This document shows positions 3,459 through 63,297 of a DNA stretch of 64,000 nt, in pieces. Where the stretch lies: the IMG/VR virus record IMGVR_UViG_3300011113_000805, positions 193,179 to 257,178 of that record, one strand, 5' to 3'. The translations under genes and the position numbers were made by a program. The notes under the pieces are model-generated. The model saw only the letters and a program-made list of their open reading frames with translations, was not told the DNA's origin and searched no databases. Positions within the stretch are counted from its first letter, which is position 1. Every line of letters starts with the position of its first letter.

Positions 3459-4844
3459 TTAGTGGCCCATTAAGTGACGCAAAAGTGTTTGCGTCTCTAT
3501 GGCGAGATTTTTGCGAAGTTGTTTTGATTCATTAACGACTATAACTTTTGAAAAGTTCTTTCCTTTATGCCACTGAACATACTTGTTGTCTGTGAATCGA
3601 AGCTCGACCCTTAGCACGTCTTCAAAAAGACCATTAGAATTTTGCAGATCTACAAAATAAGCTATACCAAAATTTTTCCCTTCACGTAAAATGACTTTTG
3701 AAGAGTCATTTCCATCAGGAAGGGTTACATTTGGAATATTCTTTCTGTTAAATTGCACAATTGCATACGAAGCAGCACCATCGATAATTCCAAGCCATTC
3801 ACGTGCCTCAAAAAGGAGTGAATTTTCCCAATCCGGATTTTGAGCCATCTTTTCATGCACGGTCACCAATGAAGGTTCAATAGGTGCTCTTCCTTTGATT
3901 GGGTTCTTGTCTCTTCTCCAAGTAATACCGGTATCAGGTTCACGTGAGACAGATTTGAAAATTTCACTCGAGGACTTCAGGCCATTGTTGATTTTCAATC
4001 GAGAACCACCCAATCTTTTTGTGTCACCCCACTTGACAGAAATGTCAACCTTTTCTCCATTTGAAAGAATTGCAATCATGTCAACAACACCACTTCCACC
4101 AGCAGGTGGATTTCCTGTGACATTTGCACCCTCAAGTGCACCTAAATTGCTGGTTAAATTACTTGTCATGACTCTAATTGCATTAATGAAAATTTCACGA
4201 TCATTAATTCTAGAGTTTGCCCATGCATCGGAAATACGTGTATCTTTAACAAAAAGTTTCTCATCTTCCAAAGATGATGAAACAAATTCATCAAATCCTT
4301 CATTACGACCTGTGGGGGTTTGCTCACCACCTAAAGAAAACCAAACCGCCCACTCAGCGGCATATCCCATCATTTTGTCGCTGGTTAGTGTGCTTTTCCC
4401 ACCTTTTCCTAAGATTGGAATAAATGGTACAACATACATTCCTGATGTCAAATCAGGATGTTGTGTGATCGTGATAAGAAGAGACTCATATTTTCCAGAT
4501 CCTACACCAGATTTTGGCGCAGGATTAGTTCCATCCCATTTTTGAATCTCGATTCCTGGGTTTTTTGCAGCATCTTTAAGGCCGGAAAAAGTCTCTTCGA
4601 ATGTATCCCATGCTGAGACTTTTCCTATTTGAACCGGTGATCCAGGACTAAGGTCTGTCTGTAGTCTTCCTCTATTTGCTGTAACAGGAACGACAATGCC
4701 ACCTGAAAGTTCTGATAGTTTTAATACCACCTCTCTGTGTTGCTTGGTTCCTTCAGCATAAACTTTAAAGCCCTGACTATTGGGGTTTATTGAAGACTCA
4801 TTAAGCTGCTTTAAAAGGATCCGGCAAAGCTCGATTTCTTTCAT
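3459..4844 (-). CDS. Putative PD-(D/E)XK nuclease-like protein with leader motif
   Basis: VDMIA...VDISVKWG; N-terminal LCRILLKQLNE. Confidence 0.4.
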   Translation of the reverse strand: MKEIELCRILLKQLNESSINPNSQGFKVYAEGTKQHREVVLKLSELSGGIVVPVTANRGRLQTDLSPGSPVQIGKVSAWDTFEETFSGLKDAAKNPGIEIQKWDGTNPAPKSGVGSGKYESLLITITQHPDLTSGMYVVPFIPILGKGGKSTLTSDKMMGYAAEWAVWFSLGGEQTPTGRNEGFDEFVSSSLEDEKLFVKDTRISDAWANSRINDREIFINAIRVMTSNLTSNLGALEGANVTGNPPAGGSGVVDMIAILSNGEKVDISVKWGDTKRLGGSRLKINNGLKSSSEIFKSVSREPDTGITWRRDKNPIKGRAPIEPSLVTVHEKMAQNPDWENSLLFEAREWLGIIDGAASYAIVQFNRKNIPNVTLPDGNDSSKVILREGKNFGIAYFVDLQNSNGLFEDVLRVELRFTDNKYVQWHKGKNFSKVIVVNESKQLRKNLAIETQTLLRHLMGH

Positions 4845-4915
4845 CTTGTTATCCTAACATATTTGCTAATTATGCATTACCGTAACATACAACAAGCGTG
4901 CACCTTAAAATGATC

Positions 4916-5019
4916 TTCCTGTTGTTCCTGATTAAATCATGTGATATCAGGAACAACAGGAAATAGGTATATCCATTGCTTTGCCACAATTCCCTGATAA
5001 CAACGTTGTTATCAGGGAA
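4916..5019. repeat. 17-bp inverted repeat followed by a 30-bp perfect palindrome
   Basis: 4916-4932 pairs with 4946-4962; ttccctgataacaac|gttgttatcagggaa at 4990-5019. Confidence 0.85.
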
Positions 5020-5021
5020 CC

Positions 5022-5399
5022 TTATCTGTCGTTTCGTCTTGCTGCCTTATATGCTTGACGTGCAGCAGTCTGCAATGATTCTGCATAACCATCATCAGAT
5101 CCGCCATAAACATCGTCAATTAGAACCCACCCAAACTTCCATGGCTTGCTGGCAGAATCCATTCTTGCTTCATCTGCATATGCATTGTCACCATTAATGT
5201 CAAACACAACTGCAGTTGAGTCCAATCCAATTTGATTAAAATCTATTCTCCACACTTTGTCATCAGTGCTATCATATTCCAGGGTTACTTCACCGATGTT
5301 TGGAATATGAACCCTTGTATCTGCGCTCTCTAATACTAATCTCTTTATTTCATTACGCACAATTTCACGAATCTTTGACTCACTAATGAGAACAGACAT
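5022..5399 (-). CDS. Leader-bearing hypothetical protein
   Basis: ISESKIREIVRNEIKRLVLE. Confidence 0.7.
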   Translation of the reverse strand: MSVLISESKIREIVRNEIKRLVLESADTRVHIPNIGEVTLEYDSTDDKVWRIDFNQIGLDSTAVVFDINGDNAYADEARMDSASKPWKFGWVLIDDVYGGSDDGYAESLQTAARQAYKAARRNDR

Positions 5400-5427
5400 T
5401 TTATGTCTCCTTTCATGCTATATAGAC

Positions 5428-6714
5428 TTAACAAGCCTTAATTTCTTCACGAATAAGCAACCGAAGAAGATTCACGGCATTTCGACCCTCAGCAACAGGA
5501 GGCGGTTTTGAGCTTCCTTTACCGTACTTAAAGATCCCTAGGATCATGTTTGCTGCCGCAAAGCTTCCTGTGAATTTATAAGCATTTCCCTTATAAATAA
5601 AGACAACTCCCTCCACAGGTGTTGTCACGTTATCAACAGATCCTAACTTTTCAAGTTGAGACTGAAGAAAACTCATCGATCCAGCATCACCGGCTGCTCT
5701 AATATTTGCGATTGCATTACTGACTTCCTGCCGAAGACGAACAACCTCAGCGTCATTGTCATTGATAAGAGTAGACTTAAGTCCTCTTAGAAGTTCAACA
5801 GCAAATTCATTGATTGCTAATTCAATAGGCCTAACACAGGCCTTAAGAATCTTTGGTGACTCCTTGACAAAATTATTGACTCTTGTATAAACCTCAGGTG
5901 TCAAATTTTTCTTGATATCCGCCAAAGAAGGAGCACCTGGCATCTTTACACAACGTGCAATCACCATTTCTTCCATTCGTGGTTGCAGTGCCAATTGACC
6001 AATCTCGCGCTTAATGCAAGCAGCTAAATATTGTGCCATGGTTGCTGAGTCATCTAATCCTGTAGAAGACAGTGATTGATCAATTACCGATGTTACCCTA
6101 TCTAGGATCCTACCATCAGAGATGGCACGAAGCCTGGCAATTGCAGGTCCCTTTACCTGCCAAGATTTATCAGATACTGTGTCCTGCATCTGATTTACAT
6201 AGCCATCAAGAATATCAACACTTCCATCAGCATCCGGGCCTGCCTCTACTTCACCACCGGAAACATTAAAAACAGGCCAACCGTGAAAGACCAAGGTGTT
6301 CTTGTCATAGTTAATGACATTAGGATTTTTCGTGTAAATGACTTCCATAGAGAACCATCGATCTCCGGATGGGCCAAAAATTCTCGTCCGTTTCTCAGGT
6401 GGGATTACACGAAGTGCCTTGGAAAGAATGCTGAATGCTGAGTCGAAAGCATCCTTAATATTGCCACGACCTTCAAATTTTGCTGCCAATTCCTCAGCAT
6501 TCATTCCGCCACGTTTAATGTCACCACCCGCTCGAGCAACTTTCACATTGCCTTGCTGCTCATCCCAGGTGAAAACAAGGTTCATGCCATCAAGCTTTTC
6601 TGTTGCAGATGTCAGTTTTCCTGACGCAGCGGCAGACAGAATGTCTTTCATCTCCCAAAAGTGAAGATCAGGATTATCATACAAATGCATCAAGTGACCA
6701 ACTGCACCGCCCAT
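5428..6714 (-). CDS. ATP-dependent ligase-superfamily (RNA ligase-like) nucleotidyltransferase
   Basis: Motif I TEKLDG, motif IV EGVVF, motif V YKFTG; C-terminal LLRLLIREE. Confidence 0.6.
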   Translation of the reverse strand: MGGAVGHLMHLYDNPDLHFWEMKDILSAAASGKLTSATEKLDGMNLVFTWDEQQGNVKVARAGGDIKRGGMNAEELAAKFEGRGNIKDAFDSAFSILSKALRVIPPEKRTRIFGPSGDRWFSMEVIYTKNPNVINYDKNTLVFHGWPVFNVSGGEVEAGPDADGSVDILDGYVNQMQDTVSDKSWQVKGPAIARLRAISDGRILDRVTSVIDQSLSSTGLDDSATMAQYLAACIKREIGQLALQPRMEEMVIARCVKMPGAPSLADIKKNLTPEVYTRVNNFVKESPKILKACVRPIELAINEFAVELLRGLKSTLINDNDAEVVRLRQEVSNAIANIRAAGDAGSMSFLQSQLEKLGSVDNVTTPVEGVVFIYKGNAYKFTGSFAAANMILGIFKYGKGSSKPPPVAEGRNAVNLLRLLIREEIKAC

Positions 6715-6763
6715 TTACCTTTACCCTCCAAAATTATATCACGTGATTTACAAATTTCAATAC

Positions 6764-7264
6764 TTAATTTTTCTGCTTAACCAACTGAGTTCCACCATAA
6801 TTTTTCTTGAGCCAATTATTTAACTGCACATCAGCGTCAGGTAAAGTGGCATCATCAGGAAGTGATTCAATATCTTTGCCAAGGTCAATGAGAAACTTGT
6901 CCTCAACACCGTTGTCTAAGATATCAGAAACATCTGGATCAATTGTAAGAAAGTCCCAAAGCGGACTAGATTCTTTCTCTTTTGGTTTTAGATTTTTTAC
7001 AATATCAAGGAGATCCTTAATTTCTGCACCGGCTTCAATTGCATCACTTACAAATGAGGCACCTGGGATAAGAGATAGGGCACCTTTAAGACCTAGAACA
7101 CCTAACTTTTTTGCCGCATGGGCACCGGTATCTTTAAGTTTCTTACCTCTAGCGGCACGAAGCTGATTGCGAAGTTCTCCCACTTGGATGTCTTCCTGCA
7201 TTATTCGCAAAGCTTCATCACGAATTACCTTACGTAGAGCTGCCTCTGTGATTCTCATAGTCAT
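6764..7264 (-). CDS. Leader-bearing hypothetical protein
   Basis: MRITEAALRKVIRDE. Confidence 0.7.
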   Translation of the reverse strand: MTMRITEAALRKVIRDEALRIMQEDIQVGELRNQLRAARGKKLKDTGAHAAKKLGVLGLKGALSLIPGASFVSDAIEAGAEIKDLLDIVKNLKPKEKESSPLWDFLTIDPDVSDILDNGVEDKFLIDLGKDIESLPDDATLPDADVQLNNWLKKNYGGTQLVKQKN

Positions 7265-7881
7265 AACCCCTTTGGCATGTCGCTGCCGGCCTTAATCATT
7301 CCAAGATCCCTTAGCTTAATTATGACCGAGGGATTGTTTTTTAAGTATCGTTTGGAGAGAGGCGAATCTTCCCAGGCAACATCAGCATCGTATTCAGCTG
7401 AATCTTGCTGACAGTTATCTTCATCGGTATCAGGTGTCAGCTCATTTTGTAAGTTGTCAAGCTGACGCTTTTCGATATCACTCCTGCCGGCATATTTTTG
7501 CCAGACATGACGAGCTCTTTGTGACACTTCAGCCCGGTCTGACATGAGACCACCACCCTCAAGTGTCGCAATCTCCATTGCAATGTCGTAGAGGAGAGGA
7601 CCAAGTTTAGGAATCTCCGAGAGTGACCAAGTGACTTCCCAGGCATCATTGCACACACCCTGCTTCTTAGTAGTTTTAGCAATGTTTATGATGGCTTGGC
7701 TGTATGTGCCATGAGTTTTCATGTTGGCTATGATTGACCATTGTGGACGGGAACTAGTGCCAGATGATTTCATTATTCTAAACTCGATACCCATTTCCTG
7801 AGCTAGCTCAGGTGTCACAGCGGTCTCTCGAAGGAGCTCACGTCTTACCATGCGGCGAAGTCTTGTCTCTGTGATTCTCAT
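7261..7881 (-). CDS. Leader-bearing GNAT-like protein (paralog family G)
   Basis: Start moved to MRITETRLRR; KLGPLLYDIAME and LMSDR..VS..A..VW motifs. Confidence 0.6.
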   Translation of the reverse strand: MRITETRLRRMVRRELLRETAVTPELAQEMGIEFRIMKSSGTSSRPQWSIIANMKTHGTYSQAIINIAKTTKKQGVCNDAWEVTWSLSEIPKLGPLLYDIAMEIATLEGGGLMSDRAEVSQRARHVWQKYAGRSDIEKRQLDNLQNELTPDTDEDNCQQDSAEYDADVAWEDSPLSKRYLKNNPSVIIKLRDLGMIKAGSDMPKGL

Positions 7882-8027: not shown

Positions 8028-8282
8028 TCAAAGATATTCCGGGCCGGCGACATCATTGAGGTAACCCTCACACCATCCACGGACTTCATCCTGCATCATG
8101 GCACAAGCATCTTCAGGATCGATCCCTGCCATTGTCATCTGATCCATGTATTCTTCCATTGCATTGGACAGTGCCTCAGTCGCGGCTGCCTGGGATTCAT
8201 TGAGCCGACGTCCTCTCCGGAACTTTCCTGCTTCTTCACGAACAATACGACGAAGTGTCGCCTCAGTAAGCTTAACGGCCAT
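8028..8282 (-). CDS. Leader-bearing hypothetical protein
   Basis: VKLTEATLRRIVREE; GGAG RBS. Confidence 0.7.
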   Translation of the reverse strand: MAVKLTEATLRRIVREEAGKFRRGRRLNESQAAATEALSNAMEEYMDQMTMAGIDPEDACAMMQDEVRGWCEGYLNDVAGPEYL

Positions 8283-8442
8283 TGTATCTCCTTTGGGGGT
8301 CTATATGTTGCCCCAGTTTCTATCTATGCAGCACCCGTAGGAAAGGGCTCAAAAGACCCAAAACTATCCGAGCGCTTGTTGCAAGTGGTGCTTAACAGCT
8401 ACAGCACCTACTCACGTCTGCTCGGATAGTTGATCCCTATCG

Positions 8443-9042
8443 TCAAATCCCGGGTGGCATATCACTGTCGGCAGTGAGCTGACCAGAATTTTTGAGCTGG
8501 ATTAATGCAGAGGGACTCCTTATTATGTATCGGTACCGGTATATACTATCCTTCTCCCAAGGATTGTTCTTGAGCGTGATCTTTTGGGCACCACTTTCAC
8601 CACTCATAAACAGACGCCAAAGATCCTCATCATAGACATCATCGGCATATAAGCCGTGTTCCGCAACGGCTCCTTTACCTACAAGCGATGCAATTTCGAT
8701 TCCAAGCGTCCAGAGGAAGACCCTTAGAGAATGTGGTGCATCGTCATATCCCATGCTCCTAATCTCCCAGGCACCATCAAGGCCCGCAGTATCTGCACTA
8801 CTGTTATCGATAATGATACCGGCTACCATATGAGCACCTAGATGATCGGCGCGCGGGGTCCCGTTGTATACCCTCACGTCATAGTATCCCGGCCACTTTG
8901 TAAAATATTTGATTCGGAATATGTAATTACCCGGCACACCCGCCCCGGTTGTGCTGCCACCTGGCAGCTGCTCGCCTGCCTCTCGAAGGATTTCGCTTCT
9001 TACCATACGACGAAGTACTGCCTCAGTAAGTTTAACTGTCAT
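8443..9042 (-). CDS. Leader-bearing divergent family G (GNAT-like) protein
   Basis: KLTEAVLRRMVRSEILRE; AWEI and C-terminal SDMP shared with 7261..7881. Confidence 0.55.
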   Translation of the reverse strand: MTVKLTEAVLRRMVRSEILREAGEQLPGGSTTGAGVPGNYIFRIKYFTKWPGYYDVRVYNGTPRADHLGAHMVAGIIIDNSSADTAGLDGAWEIRSMGYDDAPHSLRVFLWTLGIEIASLVGKGAVAEHGLYADDVYDEDLWRLFMSGESGAQKITLKNNPWEKDSIYRYRYIIRSPSALIQLKNSGQLTADSDMPPGI

Positions 9043-9133
9043 TTTGCCTCCCTTAAGGGCCCATATGTTGGCCTAGTCTTATATCTATGCAGTCACCGGC
9101 TGTGGTGATCCCAAAAGACCCAAAACTACATTG

Positions 9134-9451
9134 TCACCACGTGCCTTGCCTGGGCATCCACTGATCAATGAATCCGTGCTCGTCGATATCAAGACTAGGA
9201 TGATTTTGTACGGCTTTGATTACGTCATGTGGAGAAACTTTCTTTCCGATTTTCGGAGTCAGAAAATCTGCCATACTTTCAGGAGTCCATGGACCAGGAT
9301 CCCCTTCCATTAATTCGTCTAGAATCATTCCACCAATTTCACCGGTGAATGTGTCATATCCTTCATTACCATATGATGGATCAGCATATGCCTCCTTTAG
9401 AATTTCCTGCCTAACAATCTTTCTTAGATGTGACTCTGTGATTCTCGTCAT
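9134..9451 (-). CDS. Leader-bearing hypothetical protein
   Basis: RITESHLRKIVRQEILKE. Confidence 0.7.
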   Translation of the reverse strand: MTRITESHLRKIVRQEILKEAYADPSYGNEGYDTFTGEIGGMILDELMEGDPGPWTPESMADFLTPKIGKKVSPHDVIKAVQNHPSLDIDEHGFIDQWMPRQGTW

Positions 9452-9783
9452 GCCTCCTTTACTACTAGTGGATCAGCAGAAGTGCCCCAGCAAAAGAGCC
9501 CCTTATGGTAATAAGCTTCCCATTGTTCCCCATTCTCGCTGTCGCGGAACAATAGAACTGTCTGCTGGGCTGGAACGCCTATCCTGGCTTCCTCACCAGA
9601 TTCAGTGAACCAGCCAACAAATTCGTTAACTCCCGTCATTCCTGAGACATGGTATTTGTTTCCAATCTCCAGGTGCACAAAATTCCGTGTGTTGACTTCT
9701 TCTTCCACTTCACCTGTTGATTCATGCAGCTTTCGAATCTCGTTGCGTACGATTCTACGAAGTTGTGACTCTGTGATTCTCAT
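9448..9783 (-). CDS. Leader-bearing hypothetical protein
   Basis: MRITESQLRRIVRNEI. Confidence 0.7.
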   Translation of the reverse strand: MRITESQLRRIVRNEIRKLHESTGEVEEEVNTRNFVHLEIGNKYHVSGMTGVNEFVGWFTESGEEARIGVPAQQTVLLFRDSENGEQWEAYYHKGLFCWGTSADPLVVKEA

Positions 9784-36325: not shown

Positions 36326-36326
36326 T

Positions 36327-36851: not shown

Positions 36852-36884
36852 AGCTACCCTCCTCGAAAATTTATGTCACTATAT

Positions 36885-37514: not shown

Positions 37515-37664
37515 GACTATTTTCCCTTGCCTGTAGTTTGAATAGCTTTTGTTTCTCAAACGTGGGATCTGTCGCATCTGAAGTGTACTGAAGCTCTTGT
37601 GTTCTTTTCGCAAATCCCGCAAAGTCCTCAAGTAGAATTTCATGAATCAGATTTCTAATAGTGT

Positions 37665-39223: not shown

Positions 39224-39964
39224 TCATGAACTAATAATTTTCTTCGTGACAAATATCTTGTTCACTCGAATCGTATCTACGCCAATAATTTCCCGTTCAT
39301 CCTTAAATGGTTCGAAATCTCGAAGCCAATACAGGGGTGACATGTCAATAAACTTTAAAGGGTTCTCTTCCACATCAGCACACAAAATAACCGCATAACC
39401 ACTTTCACCTTGCGCCAAATTTAGTTTGTCTAAGTTTCGAATGGCAAATTTCTCAGCTATCTGCTTGCTTTTTGACCATGAGGACGAATATCTGGCTTCT
39501 GTATTTGTAATGTCAATATTGACATCAATTTCTATTTCTTTGTGAGGTGGCATGTTAAGTATTTGAGATGACTCTACATCAGCCGGCATCCATTTCATCA
39601 ATGAATTGCTGCTCACGGCTATACCTCGATGTGCTATGACAAATATTGAAGGTTCCGCAAAAATATCAGAATAGAGCCCATTACGAATGAACTCCATAAT
39701 TTGATTAGCGTATTGATAAGGAAGTGCATGTTTTCCAACTTCTGTGTGCAATTGCAATGCCCCCAATAGCTTCAATTCTGCGGCATTGTTTCTTTCCCAT
39801 GGTGGTTTAGGTCTTTGCAGTCTTTGGTGTAATCCACTGGGCAGATGTGTACCAGCAAATGCATATTTCCCAAGAGGTGCATCAGCAGATTCCTCAGGAT
39901 CATAAGGCGTAGCAGATTCAGCCAAAAGGATTTGATGCACAAGAGAACGGAGGTACGTCTTCAT
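39224..39964 (-). CDS. Leader-bearing R-S-E ADP-ribosyltransferase
   Basis: MKTYLRSLVHQILLAE; HRG / SSWS / EREI. Confidence 0.7.
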   Translation of the reverse strand: MKTYLRSLVHQILLAESATPYDPEESADAPLGKYAFAGTHLPSGLHQRLQRPKPPWERNNAAELKLLGALQLHTEVGKHALPYQYANQIMEFIRNGLYSDIFAEPSIFVIAHRGIAVSSNSLMKWMPADVESSQILNMPPHKEIEIDVNIDITNTEARYSSSWSKSKQIAEKFAIRNLDKLNLAQGESGYAVILCADVEENPLKFIDMSPLYWLRDFEPFKDEREIIGVDTIRVNKIFVTKKIISS

Positions 39965-40669
39965 TTAGACGACCCTTCTTACCGTAACAGCACTTGCTCG
40001 AATAGGTCCCAGACCGATCACTTCACTCTCAGATCGAAATTCTTCTTCAAAGTCAGCATCGAAATTGAGAATATAAAGTGGTTCTGCATCAATAAATCTG
40101 CCAGGGTTATCTACCGATTGCGCCTCAAAAACGACTGAATACATAGGGCCCCATCGGGATTTATGCTTCTCGGAAAACACGGATGCATCAATGGATGAGA
40201 ATCTATCAGTCACACTTCTTATCTGCGACCAAGACGATGCAAACCTATCCTTAAGCGGGGCAATGAGATAATTGCCGGTTCCTTTCCATGTCTCACCAAC
40301 ATCTAATGATGGCAGGTCAGGAACCATGCTCAATAGTTCGGGTGTGATTAGGCGCATTCCACGATAACAAGTTCCTTCAAAAGGATGAAAGACATCTTTG
40401 TAGATGCCTTTCTTAACAAAGTCAACGATTGCTTCACCATAAGCTTTCGTAAGAGGTCTCATTCCAAAAAAATGATCACGAATTGCACGTAAAAATGCAC
40501 TTTCCTTAGGATTGTTTTTCTCTAAAGGAGGTGGTTTCTGAATGCCTTGTCTCTGGGGTGAGAATGCATATTTGTCAAGAAGGGATCCCGCAGGAGCAGC
40601 TTCAATGTCACTCTCTAGAGACTCACATAAGATCTCCTTTATCAAAAGCCTTAAATCTCTTTCATTCAT
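39965..40669 (-). CDS. Leader-bearing R-S-E ADP-ribosyltransferase
   Basis: CYRG / SSWS / ESEV. Confidence 0.7.
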   Translation of the reverse strand: MNERDLRLLIKEILCESLESDIEAAPAGSLLDKYAFSPQRQGIQKPPPLEKNNPKESAFLRAIRDHFFGMRPLTKAYGEAIVDFVKKGIYKDVFHPFEGTCYRGMRLITPELLSMVPDLPSLDVGETWKGTGNYLIAPLKDRFASSWSQIRSVTDRFSSIDASVFSEKHKSRWGPMYSVVFEAQSVDNPGRFIDAEPLYILNFDADFEEEFRSESEVIGLGPIRASAVTVRRVV

Positions 40670-41419: not shown

Positions 41420-41689
41420 CTAAATGTTCTTTAGCAATTTCCTTGCTTCAGCGGAAGTTTGAAAACTTCCAACTGGTGTATCGACATATCCATAAACTGC
41501 CAGGATTTCCCCTCGCTTAGCGTAATGTGTAAGAGTCTTATTCTTTACACGATAAATAACACCATCTATCGAGTAGATCCCATCAGCTTTGGTTTTTGCC
41601 TTTTCGGCAAGTTTATCACGAATTTTATCTTCCTTAAGAAGATTCTCAACTTCTTCCTTAACTAAAGTTCTTAGTACAGATTCATTCAT
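41420..41689 (-). CDS. Leader-bearing hypothetical protein
   Basis: MNESVLRTLVKEEV..LLKE. Confidence 0.65.
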   Translation of the reverse strand: MNESVLRTLVKEEVENLLKEDKIRDKLAEKAKTKADGIYSIDGVIYRVKNKTLTHYAKRGEILAVYGYVDTPVGSFQTSAEARKLLKNI

Positions 41690-48820: not shown

Positions 48821-49555
48821 TCAACGTTGATATACTTCATCAAAGATACACGCCAACTGTTTTCCCATCAATCTAGGCATTCTATCAATAGGAAATCCCA
48901 TTTTGCTTAATGCGACGCGGGCTTCATTGTGCCTTGCTTCAAGTTGGGACAAACCGTTAGGTTCAGTCTTAATTTTGTATTTGTAATTAAGCCATTGTCG
49001 ATCTTGCAATTTGCAGTCATCTTCGATTGGAGGGGTTTGAGGATCCTCATAATTGTCAAACTCTAGTGCCTCTATTTCACCACTCTTTGCGCGATTATTA
49101 TAGTTCTTCCAAATTTTGGCAGCTGAGTCACTCGTTTCGCTTCTATCTGATGTGAGTCCGCCATAGTACCACATTGCAGCTTCATATGCAGCAGGTCCCA
49201 TTCCTGTTCCTGGCCACGCAGCTGAGAACTCAACATAGTAAGAACCTAAACACTCAGCATTCCAACTCAATTTATTCACTTTTCTAACAAAAACACCTGA
49301 TTTGACAATGGGATTACCTAATTCTAAAGACTCCTCAATAGCAAAAGGTATTGCCTCTGTGGCCCTGGCATATCTCACACTTTCGATTAGCAGATTTGGA
49401 TCATAGATTGCAACCCCCTCCAGCTCGTTTTTATGGCCGCGATGCATGATATCGCAAATTGCATATCCCATACTAACAGCACGTGAAATCGGCGATGTTG
49501 ATTCAGTCAGCATCATGTGAAGTATTGTTTCTCGAATAAATTCCCTTAGGATCAT
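48821..49555 (-). CDS. Leader-bearing GNAT-like protein (family G)
   Basis: MILREFIRE..LTE; GTGMGPAAYE, LTSDR..TS..A.KIW. Confidence 0.6.
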   Translation of the reverse strand: MILREFIRETILHMMLTESTSPISRAVSMGYAICDIMHRGHKNELEGVAIYDPNLLIESVRYARATEAIPFAIEESLELGNPIVKSGVFVRKVNKLSWNAECLGSYYVEFSAAWPGTGMGPAAYEAAMWYYGGLTSDRSETSDSAAKIWKNYNNRAKSGEIEALEFDNYEDPQTPPIEDDCKLQDRQWLNYKYKIKTEPNGLSQLEARHNEARVALSKMGFPIDRMPRLMGKQLACIFDEVYQR

Positions 49556-50265: not shown

Positions 50266-50927
50266 GCAGTCATTCCTGCAGCTTCTGCAAGAGCTATTAC
50301 GTGATCTTCACGAACTTTAAACACAACCTGATGATTGACACGTTCAACCCATCCTACATTAAAAAATCTGGGAATTCCGTTCTCTTTTGTGATCCAATGC
50401 TCATTTGAAAGTTTCTGATCGGGAACACAATTTTCTATTGCGGTCCATCGATCGCTATCCGACCACCCAATTTCATCACCATATTCATCAAATTCTGTGT
50501 TGTGTTCCTCATATGCCTTCCAGCTGAAGTCTGGGCCGTAAGGATTGCGAGGGGAGTTTGGGCACCACCACCCAATTGGCTTGAATAATTTCGCATCCTT
50601 TGCGGCATAAACATAATGTCTCGAATACACATCTTCTTCATTTAACCCTTTAAGGCAACCTTGAATTGTTGGGGCGACAGACATTCTGGGAGTTGTTTCA
50701 TCCTCAATCACATTTCCATGCATGTCCTCGTATGGAGAACTTGGCACTTGTAGTCGTGGCATAAATGAATCACCAAGCCATTTAGTGGTTAGGTGAAATG
50801 CATTAAACCTCTTCTCAAATTTTGCAATCTTCCTAGGTTGACGCATGCGTCTCTTTGTGTACAGAGGAATTTCAGTCTCTTCAAGATTGAGGGTTTCAAC
50901 TAATGACAATATTCTTGAATTTCTCAT
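50262..50927 (-). CDS. Hypothetical protein, possible ART-like fold
   Basis: FHLT...ED.TTPR..VAPTI.GCL...VPD....EHW. Confidence 0.4.
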   Translation of the reverse strand: MRNSRILSLVETLNLEETEIPLYTKRRMRQPRKIAKFEKRFNAFHLTTKWLGDSFMPRLQVPSSPYEDMHGNVIEDETTPRMSVAPTIQGCLKGLNEEDVYSRHYVYAAKDAKLFKPIGWWCPNSPRNPYGPDFSWKAYEEHNTEFDEYGDEIGWSDSDRWTAIENCVPDQKLSNEHWITKENGIPRFFNVGWVERVNHQVVFKVREDHVIALAEAAGMTA

Positions 50928-51733
50928 GTATCCCCCGTCCATTTATGAACAAGTTGCTTCCATTCATTCTGCGCCATTGTTTGCATTGTGCTGTTGAAAA
51001 CTGGTAATCCTGTTTTTTCAATTAATTCGATTATGTGCAGAGGGTCATGTCTATGCAAGCTTGTATCGCGTCTATTCCAATCTTCAATAATAATTCCTAT
51101 AGGACTCCAGTTATCTACAATGAGTTCATTCGATCCATGCATGTTTTCATCGAACGTTTCCTTGCCAAGGATATAGTAATCGGCTGTCTCATCAAATCCT
51201 CCTGCAGGATCAGATAAAAAAATGTTTGGTCGTTTTGGCAAGCCAGATGAAGCATACTTTGCAAAGTTTAAAGGCTTGACATGCTTATGATACCCAGAAA
51301 CAACTGCGTCCATATCATTGGCGGCCAGCGTTGTTCTTCCTTGAATGACAATTCCAATGGGACCCCACCCACTCATGCGGGTAAGAATCTTTTTTCCAGG
51401 AAGATAAGCCATAGTTGACACCTCGTTCTTCCTGCTCATGGAGAGAAATCTTCCTATATCAGCAGGCTTAACCCAGTGAACTTTAACAAGGGACTTCATA
51501 AATTCATGGTCAGCCTCAGCATTCCAAGCTCTCTTCACATCTTTGGCACCCTTTTTCAACCAAGAGGGACTTGTATCAAAAAAAGGATCATTTATCCAAT
51601 AATCAGGTTCTGATTCCTGATCTATGAATGAGCTTGCATAGACTCTATTATAATTGATGTTACTAGTTCTAGATTTGAAGCCCTGACGATCTTCAGCTAA
51701 GAACTCACGTATAAGTGTAAGCACAGTCTTCAT
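50924..51733 (-). CDS. Leader-bearing hypothetical protein
   Basis: MKTVLTLIREFLAE. Confidence 0.6.
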   Translation of the reverse strand: MKTVLTLIREFLAEDRQGFKSRTSNINYNRVYASSFIDQESEPDYWINDPFFDTSPSWLKKGAKDVKRAWNAEADHEFMKSLVKVHWVKPADIGRFLSMSRKNEVSTMAYLPGKKILTRMSGWGPIGIVIQGRTTLAANDMDAVVSGYHKHVKPLNFAKYASSGLPKRPNIFLSDPAGGFDETADYYILGKETFDENMHGSNELIVDNWSPIGIIIEDWNRRDTSLHRHDPLHIIELIEKTGLPVFNSTMQTMAQNEWKQLVHKWTGDT

Positions 51734-57793: not shown

Positions 57794-58438
57794 TTAGATC
57801 ATGTTAAAGTCACCAAATGTATACGAGCTTAGTTTAAACTTGCTATAGCGAACTAATCCAAAACTTTCAAGTTTATCGAGAGCAGGTGTGCCTCCTCCCT
57901 TTCTACGATAAGCTCTAGACAGTGAGCTTCCCCACCAATTTTCTTCATTATAGTCCATCGATGACTCTTGCCTGCAGTTATCGTCAAGTGCAGGTGTCTT
58001 TTCATTTTTCATATTATCAAGCAGCACAGATTCGACATCTGGGCGAGACCTCAGATAGAAGTCCCAGATTCGCAGGGCATCCGGCTTGACATCAAATCTG
58101 TCACATGTCAGCGGATCTGGCGACACAAGGTCCATCATCAAGTCGTACACAAGCGGTCCTAATCCTTTCAATTTTGGACTCATATTTGCCCATGTTACCG
58201 ACCAAGCAGCTGAGCATGGACCGTCACTTTCTGAATCCCTTCTTGCCGAAAATTCACCAGCTATTTCTGGAGGCATGTCTTCACTAATAGACATAACTCG
58301 TATAGCAATTTGTCCTTCTTCTTTATTGTTAACAATAAATTGCACACCTTTTTCGTCGGCCATTTCAGGTGTCCAAGCGGCCTCTCGAAGGATCTCACTG
58401 CGAACAAGGGATCTTAATCTAGATTCAGTAATTCTCAT
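57794..58438 (-). CDS. Leader-bearing GNAT-like protein (family G)
   Basis: MRITESRLRSLVRSEILRE; KGLGPLVYDLM. Confidence 0.6.
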   Translation of the reverse strand: MRITESRLRSLVRSEILREAAWTPEMADEKGVQFIVNNKEEGQIAIRVMSISEDMPPEIAGEFSARRDSESDGPCSAAWSVTWANMSPKLKGLGPLVYDLMMDLVSPDPLTCDRFDVKPDALRIWDFYLRSRPDVESVLLDNMKNEKTPALDDNCRQESSMDYNEENWWGSSLSRAYRRKGGGTPALDKLESFGLVRYSKFKLSSYTFGDFNMI

Positions 58439-58447
58439 TGCAGTGTC

Positions 58448-59293
58448 TCAAGAAAGATTGTTCATGAATTCTACGTTATTGACAATTGACTCATGCCTCT
58501 TACGAAGCTTTGATGCAATTGTCTGAAGTTCCACTGTCCACTGATTCAATAGTTTCCCCATTCTGCGATCATCTAGCTCACCAGATACCTCATCATCACA
58601 CTGATTAATGAGAGCCTCAATTTTGTTCCATGGAACACTCATGAAATTTTTAGCAGCGACCTTAAGGTCAGAATGGATAAAAACATATCCTGCGTCAGTT
58701 CCTGGCGTGAGCATTGTTCTCATCTCGCTTGGTTCATCCGAGAATCGTGATCCTTTGCGACTTCCTTGAGCGCGAAATGTCAAGGCGCCACCAGGATCGA
58801 TCCTCACAGGACGACCTGATGGATTAATGATAACATTCCCAGGACCAACAACATCCCAGTTGGCAAGAAAAATATCCACATAGACACCGGCAGACATCGC
58901 TCGAGCAAGTTCTGTAGGTTTTATTGTGAAAGATTTTCCTCCATCAACTCCTAAGGTGGCTAATCCAACTCTCTTCTTGGTCCTGTCATAGACAAGTTCA
59001 ATCTTTCCTGGCAGATCAACGTCGGGGTAGAGCGAGTAAATCTTATATGCTAGCCACTCAACGAGGATCTGAAGTGATGGGTCAATGCCAGGATCGTAGA
59101 GTTCTGTATCCGAGAACTTGAGATAGAACTTGTCACCTCCAATATAGCAGGTGTTCATCACGTGTGTTGAGCCACGTGTCATACATACACCTTGAAGATC
59201 TTCATAATCGACTTCATTTAGAAGTGACTCATAAAGTAGCTCATTTATAACATGACGAAGAAAATCTGTGGCTTTCGTCATGGATCGATTCAC
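58448..59293 (-). CDS. Leader-bearing kinase-like protein (HipA/PI3-4K-like)
   Basis: FYLKF, VEWLA, DIFLANWD...GN, RIDPG. Confidence 0.55.
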   Translation of the reverse strand: MNRSMTKATDFLRHVINELLYESLLNEVDYEDLQGVCMTRGSTHVMNTCYIGGDKFYLKFSDTELYDPGIDPSLQILVEWLAYKIYSLYPDVDLPGKIELVYDRTKKRVGLATLGVDGGKSFTIKPTELARAMSAGVYVDIFLANWDVVGPGNVIINPSGRPVRIDPGGALTFRAQGSRKGSRFSDEPSEMRTMLTPGTDAGYVFIHSDLKVAAKNFMSVPWNKIEALINQCDDEVSGELDDRRMGKLLNQWTVELQTIASKLRKRHESIVNNVEFMNNLS

Positions 59294-59814
59294 CTGATAT
59301 CAGGATGCATTTCAGCAAGTTCTGCCAGAGTTAGCCTAACAGCATGGTCAGGTGTATTGGTAGTTTCACGCTTTGCAAGGTAAAGCTCCAAAACTGTCTC
59401 AGCTCCAAGTGCTTCAATATACTTTGTGAGCTCGCCATCTTGCATGTATGATCCTGAACGATAGCCTAGTTGAGCTTCTTTAAGAACTTCTTTGCGAATC
59501 ATGTTTCTCAAGTTGCGATTCGTGATTCTCATTTTACCTTTCTCCTCTGTGATTTCTATTTTAAGTTTACCATCACCACGAATGACCCTGTGCCATTTTC
59601 GTGCAGGTATATTGTATGTATGCCCTTCAACGAGTTCTAGTGGCAATCCCACATCCATTTGCAAACACCACCCACCAGATTCAATAACTCTTACTTTACG
59701 ATATCTTAGATCTTGGTGCCAAACAAGTTCATCATTAGGAACAGTTGGTAAAAATTCCCTAATGAGTGTATTTCGATTAATTCTTATTTGTGTATAAGGT
59801 TTTGAACTTAACAT
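59290..59814 (-). CDS. Cupin-like domain plus internal leader-bearing C-terminal part
   Basis: VWHQD...IP..KWHRVI; MRITNRNLRNMIRKE at 59532. Confidence 0.6.
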   Translation of the reverse strand: MLSSKPYTQIRINRNTLIREFLPTVPNDELVWHQDLRYRKVRVIESGGWCLQMDVGLPLELVEGHTYNIPARKWHRVIRGDGKLKIEITEEKGKMRITNRNLRNMIRKEVLKEAQLGYRSGSYMQDGELTKYIEALGAETVLELYLAKRETTNTPDHAVRLTLAELAEMHPDIR

Positions 59815-59909: not shown

Positions 59910-60920
59910 TCACATTAGTTTATACCTAAGATGCTTAGGTACTTTGTCCCAATATTTGTGATTGAAACCGTAGATCTCATATTCCACCTGTAAATCATCT
60001 GGAAGGGAGGTGATGCCTGTGCCGGTGAGGTAGAGACTGCCACCTACCTTGAGCCCTTTAGGAAGAGAGATGATAATAGGATTGTAGGAGAGAACGAGAC
60101 TACCCTTCACGTGAAGCCCTTCAGGAAGGGAGGCAATAGAAGTCTTCTCAAGGTCTAGATCACAATCCGCTACTCTTTGGTCTTTTGGCAAATTCTTAAG
60201 TCGTTCTATTAATTCTGTGTTAAGTAAAGATGTAATATCTCTGGACAACCTAATCATAACTTCACTAACCCGAATTGTGCCGGCAGCAACAACTTCATTT
60301 TCATCCTTAAAATCATCAATGCCTTCCAATTCATAAAGTCCCTCACAGTCAATCCATTTTCCAGGACTGTCTTCTACTGCGGCACAGAGAATAATAGCAA
60401 AATCAGAAGAATCATCGCCAGCAAACCCCTTAGCCTTTTTAAGGCTCTTTGTCCAAGATGCTGTGTATCTTTCATTTATGTTTGTCAAGTCAAGCTGTGT
60501 TTTGAAACTAGCAAAATCTTCACCTGTCTCTATAATCTGTCTCCAGGCATCATTAAATGCGCTTCCCTTTGGTAGAAATTTCTTCGCAACGCTCTCAGAA
60601 GAGATGGCTAACCCCCGATAGAGGGTGCCTGGTGGCGGTGCCCTGAAGATATCGGCATAGAGCCCCTGATCGATAAAGTCTAAAACTTGATCAGTGATCT
60701 CTTTCGAGAGTGGCCTATTACCATTAAAATGAGAGAATAATGCTCTATACAGCGCATTCTCAACCTGAGTATCTTCCTCCGGAGGCGGTTTGGGTGAACC
60801 TAGCCGAACGTTAGCAAAGGCATACTTTCCCAAAGGGGCATCGGCCGGGGCTTCTGGCTTATAGGCACCATTAGACTCGAGAAGAACTTGATGAATGAGT
60901 GAGCGGAGAAGGTGAGTCAT
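59910..60920 (-). CDS. Leader-bearing R-S-E ADP-ribosyltransferase + 3 LRR-like repeats
   Basis: LYRG / ASWT / ENEV; I.SLP.GL.V.G.L.L. Confidence 0.7.
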   Translation of the reverse strand: MTHLLRSLIHQVLLESNGAYKPEAPADAPLGKYAFANVRLGSPKPPPEEDTQVENALYRALFSHFNGNRPLSKEITDQVLDFIDQGLYADIFRAPPPGTLYRGLAISSESVAKKFLPKGSAFNDAWRQIIETGEDFASFKTQLDLTNINERYTASWTKSLKKAKGFAGDDSSDFAIILCAAVEDSPGKWIDCEGLYELEGIDDFKDENEVVAAGTIRVSEVMIRLSRDITSLLNTELIERLKNLPKDQRVADCDLDLEKTSIASLPEGLHVKGSLVLSYNPIIISLPKGLKVGGSLYLTGTGITSLPDDLQVEYEIYGFNHKYWDKVPKHLRYKLM

Positions 60921-62182
60921 CTTAGTTTATCCTTGAGATGTTCTGGAACATCCTCCCAGTATTTGCGATCGAGGCCGTAGATAACACCGCGCACCTGGAG
61001 GTCTGTTGGAAGGGAGGTGATACCCGTGCTGCCGAGGACGAGATCGCCACCCACGTGGAGGCCTGTCGGGAGGGAGGTGATGGGAGTTCGAGTGAGGAAG
61101 AGATCACCGCCCACATGGAGTCCTGTTGGAAGGGAGGTGATGGGAGTGAAGGAGAGGTAGAGTCTGCCGCCCACTCGGAGGCCTGTCGGGAGGGAGGTGA
61201 TGCGTGAGAAGCTGAGGTCGAGATATCCGCCCACTCGGAGGCCTGTCGGGAGGGAGGTGACAGGAGTGCTGTCGAGGTTGAGGTCTCCGTTCACCTGGAG
61301 TCCTTCTGGGAGTTTAATGAGTCTTTTGTTGCCGCCGAGCAAGAGAGATCCATTCACGTGGAGACCTGCTGGGAGGGAGGTGATGTCCGTGCCGGTGAGG
61401 TCGAGATCCCCCTTCACGACCCTCTGGTCTTTGGGCAGACGTTCGAGACTCTTCAGAATCTTCAGATTCACTGGATTCCACTTCCCAGCCTCGAAGTCAC
61501 CCGCTGCCGATCGACGGAGGGCTGACTGCTGCATGGGTCGACCCTCTCTGTCGCTGACATCAGGACGCTCAAGAGGTGTGAGAAGCTTCGATCTGTCGAC
61601 GGGTGTCCAGGGCTCAGTGACGGGGTCCCCGTTGCGAGCGACCCGCTTCCACGCCATCGGGACCGCTGTCGTCGGGTCGTAAACAACGGCTACATGGCCA
61701 TCATTCCTGCCCGTGAAGACGATACCCTTCACTTCGCGCTGGAGAGACTCGTAGACGCTCAGCGCCGAATCTGAAGTGAACGCGTCTCCCCTCGGTGGTT
61801 TAACCCCCTCCAGCACCTTGATGACTGTCTCACTGTAGCCGACTTCCTGGGCTTGCCCAGCAGGTGTGAGCGGGTGCTTATAGACCTTCAGGGCGATCTC
61901 AGGATCAAAGATGATGTACCCGTAGAGGTTCACTTTGAGCTTGATGACGTGGTCACCGTAGTAACCTCTTTCAGTCTTCGTATCTTTAAGGTCGTAGACT
62001 GTGTAGAGGCCCTTTCCGTACATTGCACCGGCACCGGCACCTGGTGTGAACTTGTCCTGCAACAGAGCGTCGATGAGAGCTTGAGGGTTAGCTCCTGTTC
62101 CATGGTAGACGACAGCCTGAGCACCGTAGACTTCCTCCAGGAGCAGGTTTTCACGAATGAGAGAGCGAAGGAGATGTGTCAT
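60917..62182 (-). CDS. Leader-bearing H-Y-type ADP-ribosyltransferase + 7 LRR-like repeats
   Basis: VYHGT...MYGKGLY...AVVYDP; 22-aa repeats. Confidence 0.7.
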   Translation of the reverse strand: MTHLLRSLIRENLLLEEVYGAQAVVYHGTGANPQALIDALLQDKFTPGAGAGAMYGKGLYTVYDLKDTKTERGYYGDHVIKLKVNLYGYIIFDPEIALKVYKHPLTPAGQAQEVGYSETVIKVLEGVKPPRGDAFTSDSALSVYESLQREVKGIVFTGRNDGHVAVVYDPTTAVPMAWKRVARNGDPVTEPWTPVDRSKLLTPLERPDVSDREGRPMQQSALRRSAAGDFEAGKWNPVNLKILKSLERLPKDQRVVKGDLDLTGTDITSLPAGLHVNGSLLLGGNKRLIKLPEGLQVNGDLNLDSTPVTSLPTGLRVGGYLDLSFSRITSLPTGLRVGGRLYLSFTPITSLPTGLHVGGDLFLTRTPITSLPTGLHVGGDLVLGSTGITSLPTDLQVRGVIYGLDRKYWEDVPEHLKDKLR

Positions 62183-63297
62183 CTTAGTTTATCCTTGAGG
62201 TGCTGAGGGACACCTGCCCAGTACTTGCGATCGAAGCCGTAGATAGCACCGCGAACCTGGAGATCTGCTGGGAGGGAGGTGATGGGAGTGCCTGTGAGAT
62301 TGAGATATCCACCCACGTGGAGTCCTGCCGGGAGGGAGGTGATGCCTGTGCGGTTGAGGTAGAGACTGCCACCTACCTTGAGATCTGTAGGAAGGGAGGT
62401 GATGCCTGTGTCGGAGAGGTCGAGACTGCCGTCCACCTTGAGACCTGACGGGAGTTCAATGAGGCTTTTGCTGCCATTGAGGAAGAGAGCGCCGGTCACG
62501 TGAAGACCTACTGGAAGGGAGGTGATACCTGTGTTACTGAGGTCGAGATTGCCCTTCACGATCCTCTGATCTTCAGGCAGGCGCTCTAGACGTTTGATGT
62601 TCATCAACAGGCTCCACTTCCCAGCTTCAAAGTCACCCATTGCCGAACGACGAAGAGCCGATTGCTTCACAGGTCGACCCTCTCTGTCACTGACATCAGG
62701 ACGGTCAATGGGTGCGAGAAGAGCTGCTCTGTCAACGGGTGTCCAGGATTTAGAATCAACCCGCTTCCACGCCATTGGGACCGCGGTCGTTGGGTCATAA
62801 ACGACGGCGACCCTGCCGTCGCGCCTACCGGTGAAGACAATGCCCTTTACTTCGTACTGAAGGGCCTTGCTGGCCCTCAAAGCGGTGTCAGAAGTGAATC
62901 TACCTGTCGGCACTCTCATAGAGCGCAACACCTTAATGGCATCTTCATTGTACCCAACTTCCTGGGCTTGCTCAGCAGGTGTGAGCGGTTTCTTGTAGAC
63001 TTTTAGAGCAACATCAGGGTCAAAAATGATGTACCCGTAGAGATTCACTTTCAATTTGATGACGTGTTTGCCATAGTCACCCTTTTCCGTCTTCGTGCCC
63101 TTAAGATCGTAGACTGTGTAGAGGCCCTTTCCGTACATTGCGCCGGCACCGGAACCTGGTGTGAACTTGTCCTGCAGCAGAGCGTCGATGAGAGCCTGAG
63201 GGTTAGCTTCCGTTCCATGGTAGACGACAGCCTGGGCGCCGTAGACTTCCTCCAGGAGTAGGGTTTCACGAATGAGAGAGCGAAGAAGGTGAGTCAT
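62179..63297 (-). CDS. Leader-bearing H-Y-type ADP-ribosyltransferase + 5 LRR-like repeats
   Basis: Same motifs as 60917..62182. Confidence 0.7.
   Translation of the reverse strand: MTHLLRSLIRETLLLEEVYGAQAVVYHGTEANPQALIDALLQDKFTPGSGAGAMYGKGLYTVYDLKGTKTEKGDYGKHVIKLKVNLYGYIIFDPDVALKVYKKPLTPAEQAQEVGYNEDAIKVLRSMRVPTGRFTSDTALRASKALQYEVKGIVFTGRRDGRVAVVYDPTTAVPMAWKRVDSKSWTPVDRAALLAPIDRPDVSDREGRPVKQSALRRSAMGDFEAGKWSLLMNIKRLERLPEDQRIVKGNLDLSNTGITSLPVGLHVTGALFLNGSKSLIELPSGLKVDGSLDLSDTGITSLPTDLKVGGSLYLNRTGITSLPAGLHVGGYLNLTGTPITSLPADLQVRGAIYGFDRKYWAGVPQHLKDKLR

Follow-up and report, generated by a model that had tools for sequence, protein, structure and literature searches.

A near-invariant 20-residue leader on diverse genes of an uncultured T4-type jumbo phage, a candidate capsid-targeting sequence

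The leader genes of the window

The stretch of DNA analysed here (the window; 64,000 nucleotides) corresponds, in the same orientation, to positions 193,114-257,113 of the 257,178-bp viral contig IMGVR_UViG_3300011113_000805 (also JGI Ga0151517_1003), which represents an uncultured jumbo phage of the T4 type with a genome of 257 kb and only a distant likeness to T4. Nearly all genes of the window are carried on the minus strand, and many of them start with one and the same peptide of about 20 residues, M-R-I-T-E-S-x-L-R-x-(I/L)-(I/V)-R-E-E-(I/L)-L-x-E-(A/S/G), in the following called leader or tag, in front of otherwise unrelated proteins, the payloads. An earlier note on this DNA had counted about 27 open reading frames (ORFs) with such a leader between positions 3459 and 63297, and had proposed that it loads a diversified set of enzymes into the phage head.

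Two hidden Markov models (HMMs) of the leader, one of 19 columns built from 12 obvious copies and one with a 15-column core built from 22 copies, were searched against the six-frame translation of the window. The minus strand yielded 26 matches of at least 6.5 bits, while no leader match with an independent E-value (iE) below 5 was found on the plus strand. Leader matches located 0-15 residues from the methionine opening a real ORF numbered 24, one match is a C-terminal copy (5428-6714) and two are off-frame noise. Together with three weaker N-termini (40669, 51733 and 59281), the HMM-supported N-termini add up to the 27 leaders that had been estimated. The leader genes do reach position 63297, but the first of them is located at 5022, and the gene at 3459-4844 is only vaguely similar. 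The three AT-rich blocks to which the leader genes had been assigned could likewise be recognized, with a GC content of 0.40-0.48 at 2-10, 34-42 and 44-60 kb compared to 0.52-0.60 between them; however, the leader genes at 60-63 kb lie in DNA with a GC content of 0.52-0.55. The description of the leader as amphipathic gained little from the mean hydrophobic moment (z = 0.44 vs shuffles), and the pattern read from the sequence is one of heptad-like hydrophobic residues with Arg/Glu pairs.

The first block, as all the genes described in this section located on the minus strand, starts with a leader gene of 125 aa without a Pfam match (MSVLISESKIREIVRNEIKRLVLES; 5022..5399; core HMM 12.9 bits). 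The neighbouring 428-aa protein (5428..6714), which matches neither Pfam nor PHROG families, carries the motif at its C-terminus, followed by the stop (LLRLLIREEIKAC; core HMM 8.7 bits). Next to it are a gene of 164 aa (MRITEAALRKVIRDEALRIMQED; 6764..7258; HMM 27 bits) and a 206-aa member of the GNAT-like family A (7261..7881; HMM 24 bits, BLAST family and alignment). The 84-aa gene at 8028..8282 (MAVKLTEATLRRIVREE) has the leader that is nearest to the head protein p90 introduced below, as judged by an HMM of p90 N-termini from relatives only (iE 4.5e-4), and the same model matches the leader of a distant, 199-aa family A member at 8443..9042 with iE 0.056 (leader HMM, BLAST family). The block ends with a gene of 105 aa, which gave the top leader HMM match of 36 bits (MTRITESHLRKIVRQEILKEA; 9134..9451), and a gene of 111 aa (9448..9783; leader HMM). 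A lone copy on a 139-aa gene is situated in a GC-rich block (MKIKLSKLKSIIREEV; 32534..32953; core HMM 9.3 bits).

In the second block, a family A gene of 198 aa (34159..34755), for which a model was calculated (see below), is followed by a 365-aa gene combining an unknown N-terminal domain with a C-terminal half that resembles the ADP-ribosyltransferase (ART)-like family B (34752..35849; BLAST to family B at 1e-29 to 1e-43, residues 160-365), by a GNAT gene of about 162 aa (35846..36334; Pfam Acetyltransf_1 7.5e-7, Acetyltransf_7 1e-6) and by a gene of 174 aa (MIISEKILRRIVREELIHEG; 36327..36851; leader HMM), whose orthologue in L004 has the canonical leader MKITESQLRRIVREEILREG. A family A gene of about 209 aa has a short extension before the leader (MRPNLRCNIKLAERKLRQLIREF; 36885..37514; HMM and BLAST family), and a 56-aa ORF with a good leader (MNTIRNLIHEILLEDF; 37498..37668; core HMM 15.7 bits) resembles the N-terminal part left over from a gene paralogous to the one at 50924-51733. 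Family B is represented by consecutive genes of 259 aa (37665..38444; R-S-ExE ART-like by its alignment invariants), 255 aa (38431..39198; alignment), 246 aa (39224..39964; the modelled protein, with ART chains among its Foldseek matches) and 234 aa (MNERDLRLLIKEILCES; 39965..40669; alignment, BLAST family), and a gene of 89 aa (MNESVLRTLVKEEVENLLKED; 41420..41689; core HMM 10.3 bits) is located beyond them.

The remaining leader genes comprise a distant family A member of 244 aa (48821..49555; core HMM, BLAST family), a 269-aa gene with a weak leader read from the sequence, at the noise level of the HMM (MKTVLTLIREFLAED; 50924..51733; no Pfam match), a 214-aa family A gene (57794..58438; leader HMM, BLAST family), a 277-aa gene with another weak leader read from the sequence (MTKATDFLRHVINELLYES; 58448..59281; no Pfam match) and a gene of 80 aa (MRITNRNLRNMIRKEVLKEA; 59290..59532; HMM 31 bits). 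Towards the end of the window, a family-B ART-like gene of 336 aa with a C-terminal 20-residue leucine-rich repeat (LRR) array (59910..60920; alignment) precedes two genes with a family C domain (VVYHGT...GKGLYT) and LRRs, of 421 aa (60917..62182; alignment, no PDB sequence match) and 372 aa (62179..63297; alignment), and an additional gene of family B or C, truncated by the window end, is represented by its LRR tail (63294..64000; BLAST).

The codons at the conserved Leu (CTT/CTC/CTG/TTG) and Arg (CGT/CGA/CGC/AGA/AGG) positions differ freely among the leaders, and therefore conservation acts on the peptide and not on the DNA. In an AlphaFold2 model of the family B protein at 39224..39964, residues 2-15 of the leader are predicted, with low confidence, as a detached helix, and the linker behind it is disordered. 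The position of the motif is not strictly N-terminal, since a C-terminal copy is also present in two HAD-like proteins of relatives, in addition to the 428-aa protein, and internal copies follow a small Cys-containing domain in the window ORF 115-471 and in L009. The former encodes a 118-aa protein with a weak internal motif (ESIIRLTVREIIRELTEA; 115..471, minus strand; HMMs) after an MPY...C...C domain, and L009 has the same architecture with the canonical RITESRLREIIREE. These proteins belong to a small family whose members start MPY(K/Y)..., contain two Cys as well as basic residues and carry the leader-like helix some 50 residues further on (L009:1091-2059); the L009 gene lies between a primase-like and a fused Mre11-Rad50 gene, which adjoin each other in the contig of the window.

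One tag on unrelated payloads

According to BLAST, the payloads form family A (four close and two distant members), family B (six domains), family C (two complete genes) and about a dozen singletons. When families B and C were compared by hhalign, only residues 1-42, i.e. the leader, could be aligned; the modularity of the system, one tag on many unrelated payloads, is thus strongly supported. Searches of nearly all payloads against Pfam and PHROGs gave almost no matches.

Family B shows an invariant R113 (YRG), S162-W163 (SSW[ST]) and E223-x-E225, in that order, in 14 sequences, and between the leader and the first conserved block PLGKYAF there is a variable, acidic and Pro-rich linker of 10-18 residues. 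Its catalytic part has no Pfam or PDB sequence match. Among the 17 top PDB matches of the family B model in Foldseek (predicted local distance difference test, pLDDT, 78), 16 belong to the ART superfamily (best E 9e-3, probability 0.90, template modelling scores 0.25-0.38). The six R-S-E ARTs that had been called before therefore correspond to six domains with the R, S and ExE invariants, but the evidence for the ART fold is weak to moderate, so that from the model the call is reasonable but not proven. The seven GNAT-like proteins are reproduced in number by the six members of family A and one Pfam GNAT, but the fold support for family A is weak: its model is poor (pLDDT 63), and most of the top Foldseek matches, the first five included, are GNAT acetyltransferases with E 0.06-0.4. 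Family A has no Pfam match; only the separate gene at 35846-36334 passes the Pfam GNAT threshold. Family C shows the motifs VVYHGT and GKGLYT in its alignment, and its previous label as H-Y ART is tentative, as are the kinase, MNT and PD-(D/E)XK labels given to other payloads. Profiles of families A and C found nothing beyond chance among PDB sequences; a match of the family A leader region to a helix of ribosomal protein eS1 (E 0.4) was dismissed as chance.

The LRRs of family C and of some family B members match PDB entry 8z5u, annotated as LRR (E 5e-12), and by their sequence these payloads would be organized in the order leader, enzyme, target-recognition repeats. The 20-residue repeat (ITSLPxGLxVxGxLxLxxT) is shuffled between families B and C (window 59910-64000; L015:7984-13769), and all LRR-bearing B/C genes end in a conserved YGxDRKYWxxVPxHLKDKL tail. 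A family-B ART in another viral contig has the full RITESQLRRIIRETLLTEA leader, while the family B copies of the window are shorter (MKTYLRSL... or MTHLLRSL...), which ties the leader variants together.

Spread of the leader

Reading about 190 kb of the contig, with 36-73 kb left out, revealed at least 8 further leader genes, which raises the total to at least 35 per genome. They include a family B/C block between two topoisomerase genes, a gene for a protein of 104 aa, a nucleotidyltransferase (CTP_transf_like, domain from residue 44) and, at contig position 812, a gene of family C. Canonical leaders were limited to contig 177-257 kb and the first kilobase, and in the part read no gene for replication, nucleotide metabolism, tail, baseplate or sugar functions, nor any gene of the PrkA region, has the leader at its N-terminus; replication genes hence do not share the motif at a similar frequency. 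In other viral contigs, leader genes occur in clusters of 5-7, part of them orthologous to genes of the window and part of them not.

A word-indexed homologue search with residues 1-40 only returned the query itself as the sole match. A 30-position leader profile searched against 1.84 billion representative metagenomic proteins matched 277 protein clusters at E <= 1e-3. In the best 150 of the 277, about 130 matches begin at residue 1, and the proteins are 34-643 aa long. A logo of 134 of 149 other representatives (start M-x-(I/L/V/M)-(T/S/K/R)) shows T4 at 97%, E5 at 94%, L8 at 92%, R9 at 99%, R13 at 98%, E15 at 91% and E19 at 78%, followed by A/S/G, so that the leader ends L17-x-E19-(A/S/G)20; the positions after it (21-24) vary and are often G, P, D or E. 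The 130 global payloads of at least 60 aa form 94 BLAST clusters, only 12 of which resemble a payload of the window, and among the longest 35, four have a Pfam match (a PolyA_pol-type nucleotidyltransferase, PG_binding_1, DUF6973 and a 2H phosphodiesterase). In some metagenomic proteins, two leaders follow each other in tandem, e.g. in P0079 with ...RLTESKLRQIICEV...RLTESKLRQI....

The near-invariance of the peptide (R9 99%, R13 98%, T4 97%) combined with free payloads indicates purifying selection on the peptide. This bears on the idea that the tag has no function and is left over from repeated duplication, or from recombination where the 5' gene end is conserved (a translation-initiation cassette or a recombination hotspot, for instance). 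The tandem arrays with overlapping stop and start codons would fit such an origin, as would the element GCATAGATA (form (G/T)(C/T)ATAGATA) common to four arrays, 38-47 nt upstream of the leader operon starts (8321-8328, 9082-9089, 9823-9830 and 36882-36889, minus strand). However, the synonymous codons vary at the conserved Leu and Arg, the peptide is near-invariant in 134 of 149 representatives while the following residues and the payloads vary, and the DNA pattern left no signal in a phage collection: neither pieces of the window nor a leader protein nor the leader by itself had a match in blastn and tblastn searches of 50,697 phage records. We therefore regard a functionless tag as very improbable.

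Similarity of the leader to two head-module proteins

A head module of the T4 type is located at contig 82.9-94 kb (PF03420, PF07230, PF07068; phrog_207, the protease, 4e-47; phrog_138, 2e-49). Its gene order is TerL (Terminase_6N), Portal_T4, a 281-aa protein, the Peptidase_S77 prohead protease, four small proteins (150, 90, 173 and 185 aa), a 611-aa acidic coiled-coil scaffold-like protein and the Gp23-type major capsid protein, and the order is the same in 32 related contigs with capsid-protein identities of 61-83%. The gp21-like protease that had been suggested as a check is hence present within a T4-type head module. At 563 aa (L146:14416-16107, contig ~88.4-90.1 kb) instead of the usual ~200, it contains an intein-like LAGLIDADG_3 insert, which starts C-V-P-P-G-T-E-I-L and ends V-W-T-G-N-C; the proteases of the relatives L194 and L207 likewise have about 556 aa.

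The first two small proteins just after the protease, p150 and p90, have conserved N-termini, M-x-K-(L/M)-(S/T)-(R/K)-x-x-L-K-x-(I/L)-V-K-E-C-L-(V/I)-E-I-L-x-E-G in p150 and M-x-x-x-K-L-T-P-x-L-L-(R/K)-(R/K)-(I/L)-V-L-(E/Q)-E-K-K-K in p90, which keep the hydrophobic register of the leader; p90 is near the window leaders MAVKLTEATLRRIVREE and MTVKLTEAVLRRMVRSE. We compared an alignment of 23 leaders by hhalign with 16 alignments of 30-residue N- and C-termini, covering eight head-module classes from about 30 relatives (the capsid pair being represented by a single sequence). The leader aligned with the p150 N-terminus over all 30 columns (probability 87%, E 4.2e-6) and with the p90 N-terminus at 52% (E 1.5e-4). 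Regarding the other 14 termini, the p90 C-terminus reached 12.7% (E 0.0023), and the remaining 13 had probabilities of at most 1.4% (E >= 0.038). When the columns of the leader alignment were shuffled, the observed score was reached in 1 of 60 cases. In addition, an HMM of the p90 N-termini of 31 relatives, searched against the six-frame translation of the window, returned the leaders at 8282 (iE 4.5e-4) and 9042 (0.056) as its top two matches, in register; two further leaders were among the next four matches at noise level (E 1.1 and 4). A C-terminal motif of p190 was not significantly similar to the leader. From these comparisons, the leader is specifically similar to the N-termini of two head-module proteins beside the prohead protease, and since the tag resembles these two small proteins, it is probably a capsid address label.

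The end of the leader and upstream elements

The T4 protease gp21 cuts after the Glu of L/I-x-E and removes head propeptides of 7-65 residues, the one of gp23 being 65 residues long (PMC9026906). As residues 56-75 of gp23 in the T4 record read AQAFGSFLTEAEIGGDHGYN, the propeptide therefore ends L-T-E and is followed by A. Several leaders end L-T-E-A, the tetrapeptide of the gp23 maturation site (residues 62-66). Moreover, the p150 helix ends I-L-x-E-G, and the capsid protein of the clade starts MARLLENQxAQ(I/L)L(K/R)E(A/S)N, which holds for each of the 30 different N-termini examined out of 54 found. The L-x-E ends of leader, p150 and capsid protein would thus fit a common protease site. The resemblance of the MKTY...(I/L)-A-E leader at 39964 to the T4 IPIII leader is suggestive, for a 10-residue peptide that is too short for a homology test.

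Besides GCATAGATA, a second element, ATACATAG(A/T)A, lies 22-36 nt upstream of the p90 and scaffold genes (L146, upstream of 16586 and 17995). The two could be a shared promoter; neither was enriched compared to shuffles or to the opposite strand, and the T4 late promoter TATAAATA is absent.

Genome and context genes

The first 165 nt of the contig recur as its last 165 nt with 98.8% identity, inside a tandem gene family, so that the contig probably represents the whole genome in a circularly permuted form. By topoisomerase II, the closest sequences are the uncultured huge phages LR756502 and LR745206 (52-54% identity) and the jumbo phages RsoM2USA and XacN1. Within the window, genes for an RNA ligase, UvdE, a pyrimidine-dimer glycosylase, a KaiC-like ATPase, a GH46 glycoside hydrolase and a MoxR-type AAA ATPase with a VWA/DUF2201 partner are those expected of a large phage. 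Contig 1-36 kb and 128-193 kb contain genes for replication, nucleotide metabolism, chaperones, sigma factors and glycosylation, and at 101-123 kb there are genes for tail proteins of very large size and for a baseplate wedge protein similar to gp25.

Outside the window (L021, L023, L024, L025, L060), we also noted GroEL, PolIII alpha, ThyX, PIN-PhoH, a PrkA/SpoVR/DUF444 trio, a sigma-70-like factor accompanied by a separately encoded region-4 protein, and some 12 kb of clustered sugar-nucleotide/glycosyltransferase genes. A 423-aa protein of the tail region (L146:1177-2448, contig ~102-103 kb) has no Pfam or PHROG match and 282 IMG/VR relatives, the best 80 of which are 50-83% identical; it is probably a major tail component. 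The GC-rich blocks of the window (10000-34000, minus strand) contain tandem paralogue families without the leader. One of them has about 15 copies of 160-180 aa, which start M(A/S)QYTLIDPxTGxQTTLSE and have a low-complexity tail, many with a conserved non-coding element before them, and LLGLL-rich ORFs in other frames are shadows of this tail; another has about 8 copies of a ~95-aa protein with the motif GRGWDxETDRIC(V/L)LLD.

A Trypsin_2 protease and an HSP20 are encoded nearby on the contig as well. They would suit a tag that is a regulatory peptide, i.e. a degron or a protease or chaperone recognition tag setting the time at which early effectors are destroyed or activated, or an auto-inhibitory or immunity-binding segment by which the enzymes stay inactive in the cell producing them, in agreement with its N-terminal, detached position before a linker. 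However, nothing links the tag to either of these two proteins, and a regulatory role would leave both the likeness to the head module and the near-invariance over at least 94 payload clusters unexplained, which makes it quite improbable.

Discussion

We conclude that the finding is real and that its capsid-targeting interpretation is plausible and better supported than when it was proposed, yet unproven. Overall, we lean towards the tag being a capsid (prohead-core) targeting sequence that loads diverse enzyme cargo for injection, which is consistent with the presence of the protease, the likeness to p150 and p90, the L-x-E-(A/S/G) end and the untagged N-termini of replication genes. According to this proposal, the leader helix would dock its carrier onto the scaffolding core of the assembling prohead, as p150 and p90 would dock; the Peptidase_S77 prohead protease would then cut after the Glu of the terminal L-x-E and free the mature enzyme inside the head; and the enzyme would be ejected into the host together with the DNA. 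We infer these docking, cleavage, packaging and injection steps from the genes. The cargo would consist of protein-modifying and nucleotide-acting enzymes (R-S-ExE ART-like, GNAT-like, nucleotidyltransferase), some of them with LRR target-recognition tails.

Several points weigh against this proposal. The canonical leader HMMs scored p90 at about 3 bits, i.e. at noise level, when searched against the head module, and the p150 HMM had no significant match in the window. p150 and p90 would be prohead-core proteins by gene position alone: neither a name nor a family was found for them, all p150 homologues being unnamed, and neither p150 and p90 nor the scaffold are similar to T4 gp67, gp68 or gp22. 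In 1.45 Mb of structural regions from relatives, canonical leaders are rare, and our searches found no cultured close relative of the phage. An (L/I)-x-E with Glu at residue 12-28 is present in 24 of 26 leaders compared to 21 of 71 control N-termini, which is not independent evidence because the site belongs to the motif defining the set. C-terminal and internal copies do not agree with an N-terminal propeptide that is simply cut off, although T4 Alt undergoes processing at its two ends (PMC9026906). Finally, leader genes neighbour topoisomerase and other non-late-looking genes, and no link to late promoters was shown.

Part of these points would equally suit a tag that stays uncleaved and acts as a docking helix for another hub (a host target, e.g. 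RNA polymerase or the ribosome, a phage chaperone or a scaffold of takeover enzymes), the likeness to p150 and p90 then reflecting a common coiled-coil-like helix. The heptad-like hydrophobic pattern with Arg/Glu pairs, the C-terminal and internal motif copies, leader genes beside replication genes, the reverse HMM searches without significant recovery of p90 or p150, and the contig-encoded GroEL as a candidate chaperone hub all agree with this. Nevertheless, the likeness is clearly strongest to two proteins next to the prohead protease, with only the p90 C-terminus (E 0.0023) coming near, the match begins at residue 1 in about 130 of the best 150 global matches, and the steady L-x-E-(A/S/G) end with a flexible linker suits a removable propeptide. 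We therefore consider docking to another hub unlikely.

Extending the capsid-targeting interpretation beyond the single genome, we give an even chance to the view that an abundant uncultured aquatic clade of the T4 superfamily, whose capsid protein has hundreds of relatives in IMG/VR, loads an open-ended, fast-turning-over set of effectors into the capsid by one near-invariant 20-residue tag. As part of this view, and with the odds similarly balanced, the tag would be derived from, or common to, the phages' own prohead-core proteins, and the cargo would comprise at least 277 clusters, mostly of unknown fold. If so, these phages would possess a natural and programmable system for protein delivery, by far exceeding the internal-protein system of T-even phages in size. 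If the tag is a capsid address, it offers a sequence rule for spotting injected proteins in metagenomes, none of which exists for abundant uncultured aquatic phages. Injected proteins are the first phage weapons against host defences, and several hundred families, mostly without a known fold, would become candidate host-takeover or anti-defence effectors. The T4 internal-protein principle would scale to dozens of enzymes per virion, LRR-guided ART-like ones included, and the tag would be a candidate tool to load foreign proteins into large capsids.

Comparison with known systems

The internal proteins of T-even phages form a very varied set in which only the capsid targeting sequence is conserved (PMC3012670), and the ART Alt is packaged and injected (PMC3012670, PMC9026906). 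The system described here resembles the T-even one (IPI-III, Alt, gp21) in its short N-terminal tag common to otherwise unrelated proteins, in the (L/I)-x-E plus small residue at the end of the tag, in the head module of the gp20/gp21/gp23 type and in its diverse cargo with ART-like members. It differs in the length of the tag (about 20 residues, R-I-T-E-S-x-L-R-x-I-I-R-E-E-x-L-x-E, compared to 10), in the number of tagged genes per genome (at least 35 compared to a handful), in a cargo consisting mostly of enzymes of up to 440 aa, some of them LRR-tailed, and in the C-terminal or internal position of some tag copies. Moreover, this phage has a PolIII alpha replicase and a sigma-70-like factor, has no detectable gp67/68/22 homology, and its packaging and cleavage steps are putative.

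In phiKZ, 201phi2-1 and SPN3US, dozens of head-internal proteins occur in paralogous families, and a diverged S77-type protease cuts after the Glu of a three-residue motif (PMC9026906). These phages share with the present one the jumbo size, the gp21-like protease and paralogous protein families, whereas their motif is S/A/G-x-E and their propeptides are long and not one common tag. Chimallivirus features were not found in this contig, and no multisubunit RNA polymerase was seen in the ~190 kb read. Encapsulin cargo-loading peptides are short, N- or C-terminal peptides on diverse enzymes, which direct their entry into a shell of the HK97 fold. Unlike the proposed tag, they bind the shell protein directly and stay uncleaved, do not involve a scaffold, portal or protease, and are unrelated in sequence.

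Polymorphic toxins and phage polyvalent or MuF-fused effectors combine a constant delivery module with variable enzymes, among which ARTs and GNATs are prominent (PMC3482391, PMC5512222, PMC9503650). The constant part with variable effectors and the prediction that the cargo travels with the phage DNA are common to both; however, the constant part of those systems is a large domain (e.g. MuF, portal, Rhs) or many domains are joined in a single polypeptide, while the constant part described here is a tag of 20 residues, carried by small genes of their own. ARTs, GNATs and further effectors that would be packaged in the head, either as fusions with MuF or portal domains or within polyvalent proteins, have been widely predicted (PMC9503650, PMC7824862), and these two papers do not mention a comparable short common leader.

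Taken together, the principle is already established for T-even phages. What is new is a different and longer tag, the scale (at least 35 genes and at least 277 clusters), an enzyme-rich cargo including LRR-bearing proteins, the origin of the tag, which as far as the N-termini indicate was apparently derived from head-module proteins of the phage itself, and the presence of the tag in an uncultured aquatic clade that is abundant and has only a distant likeness to T4.

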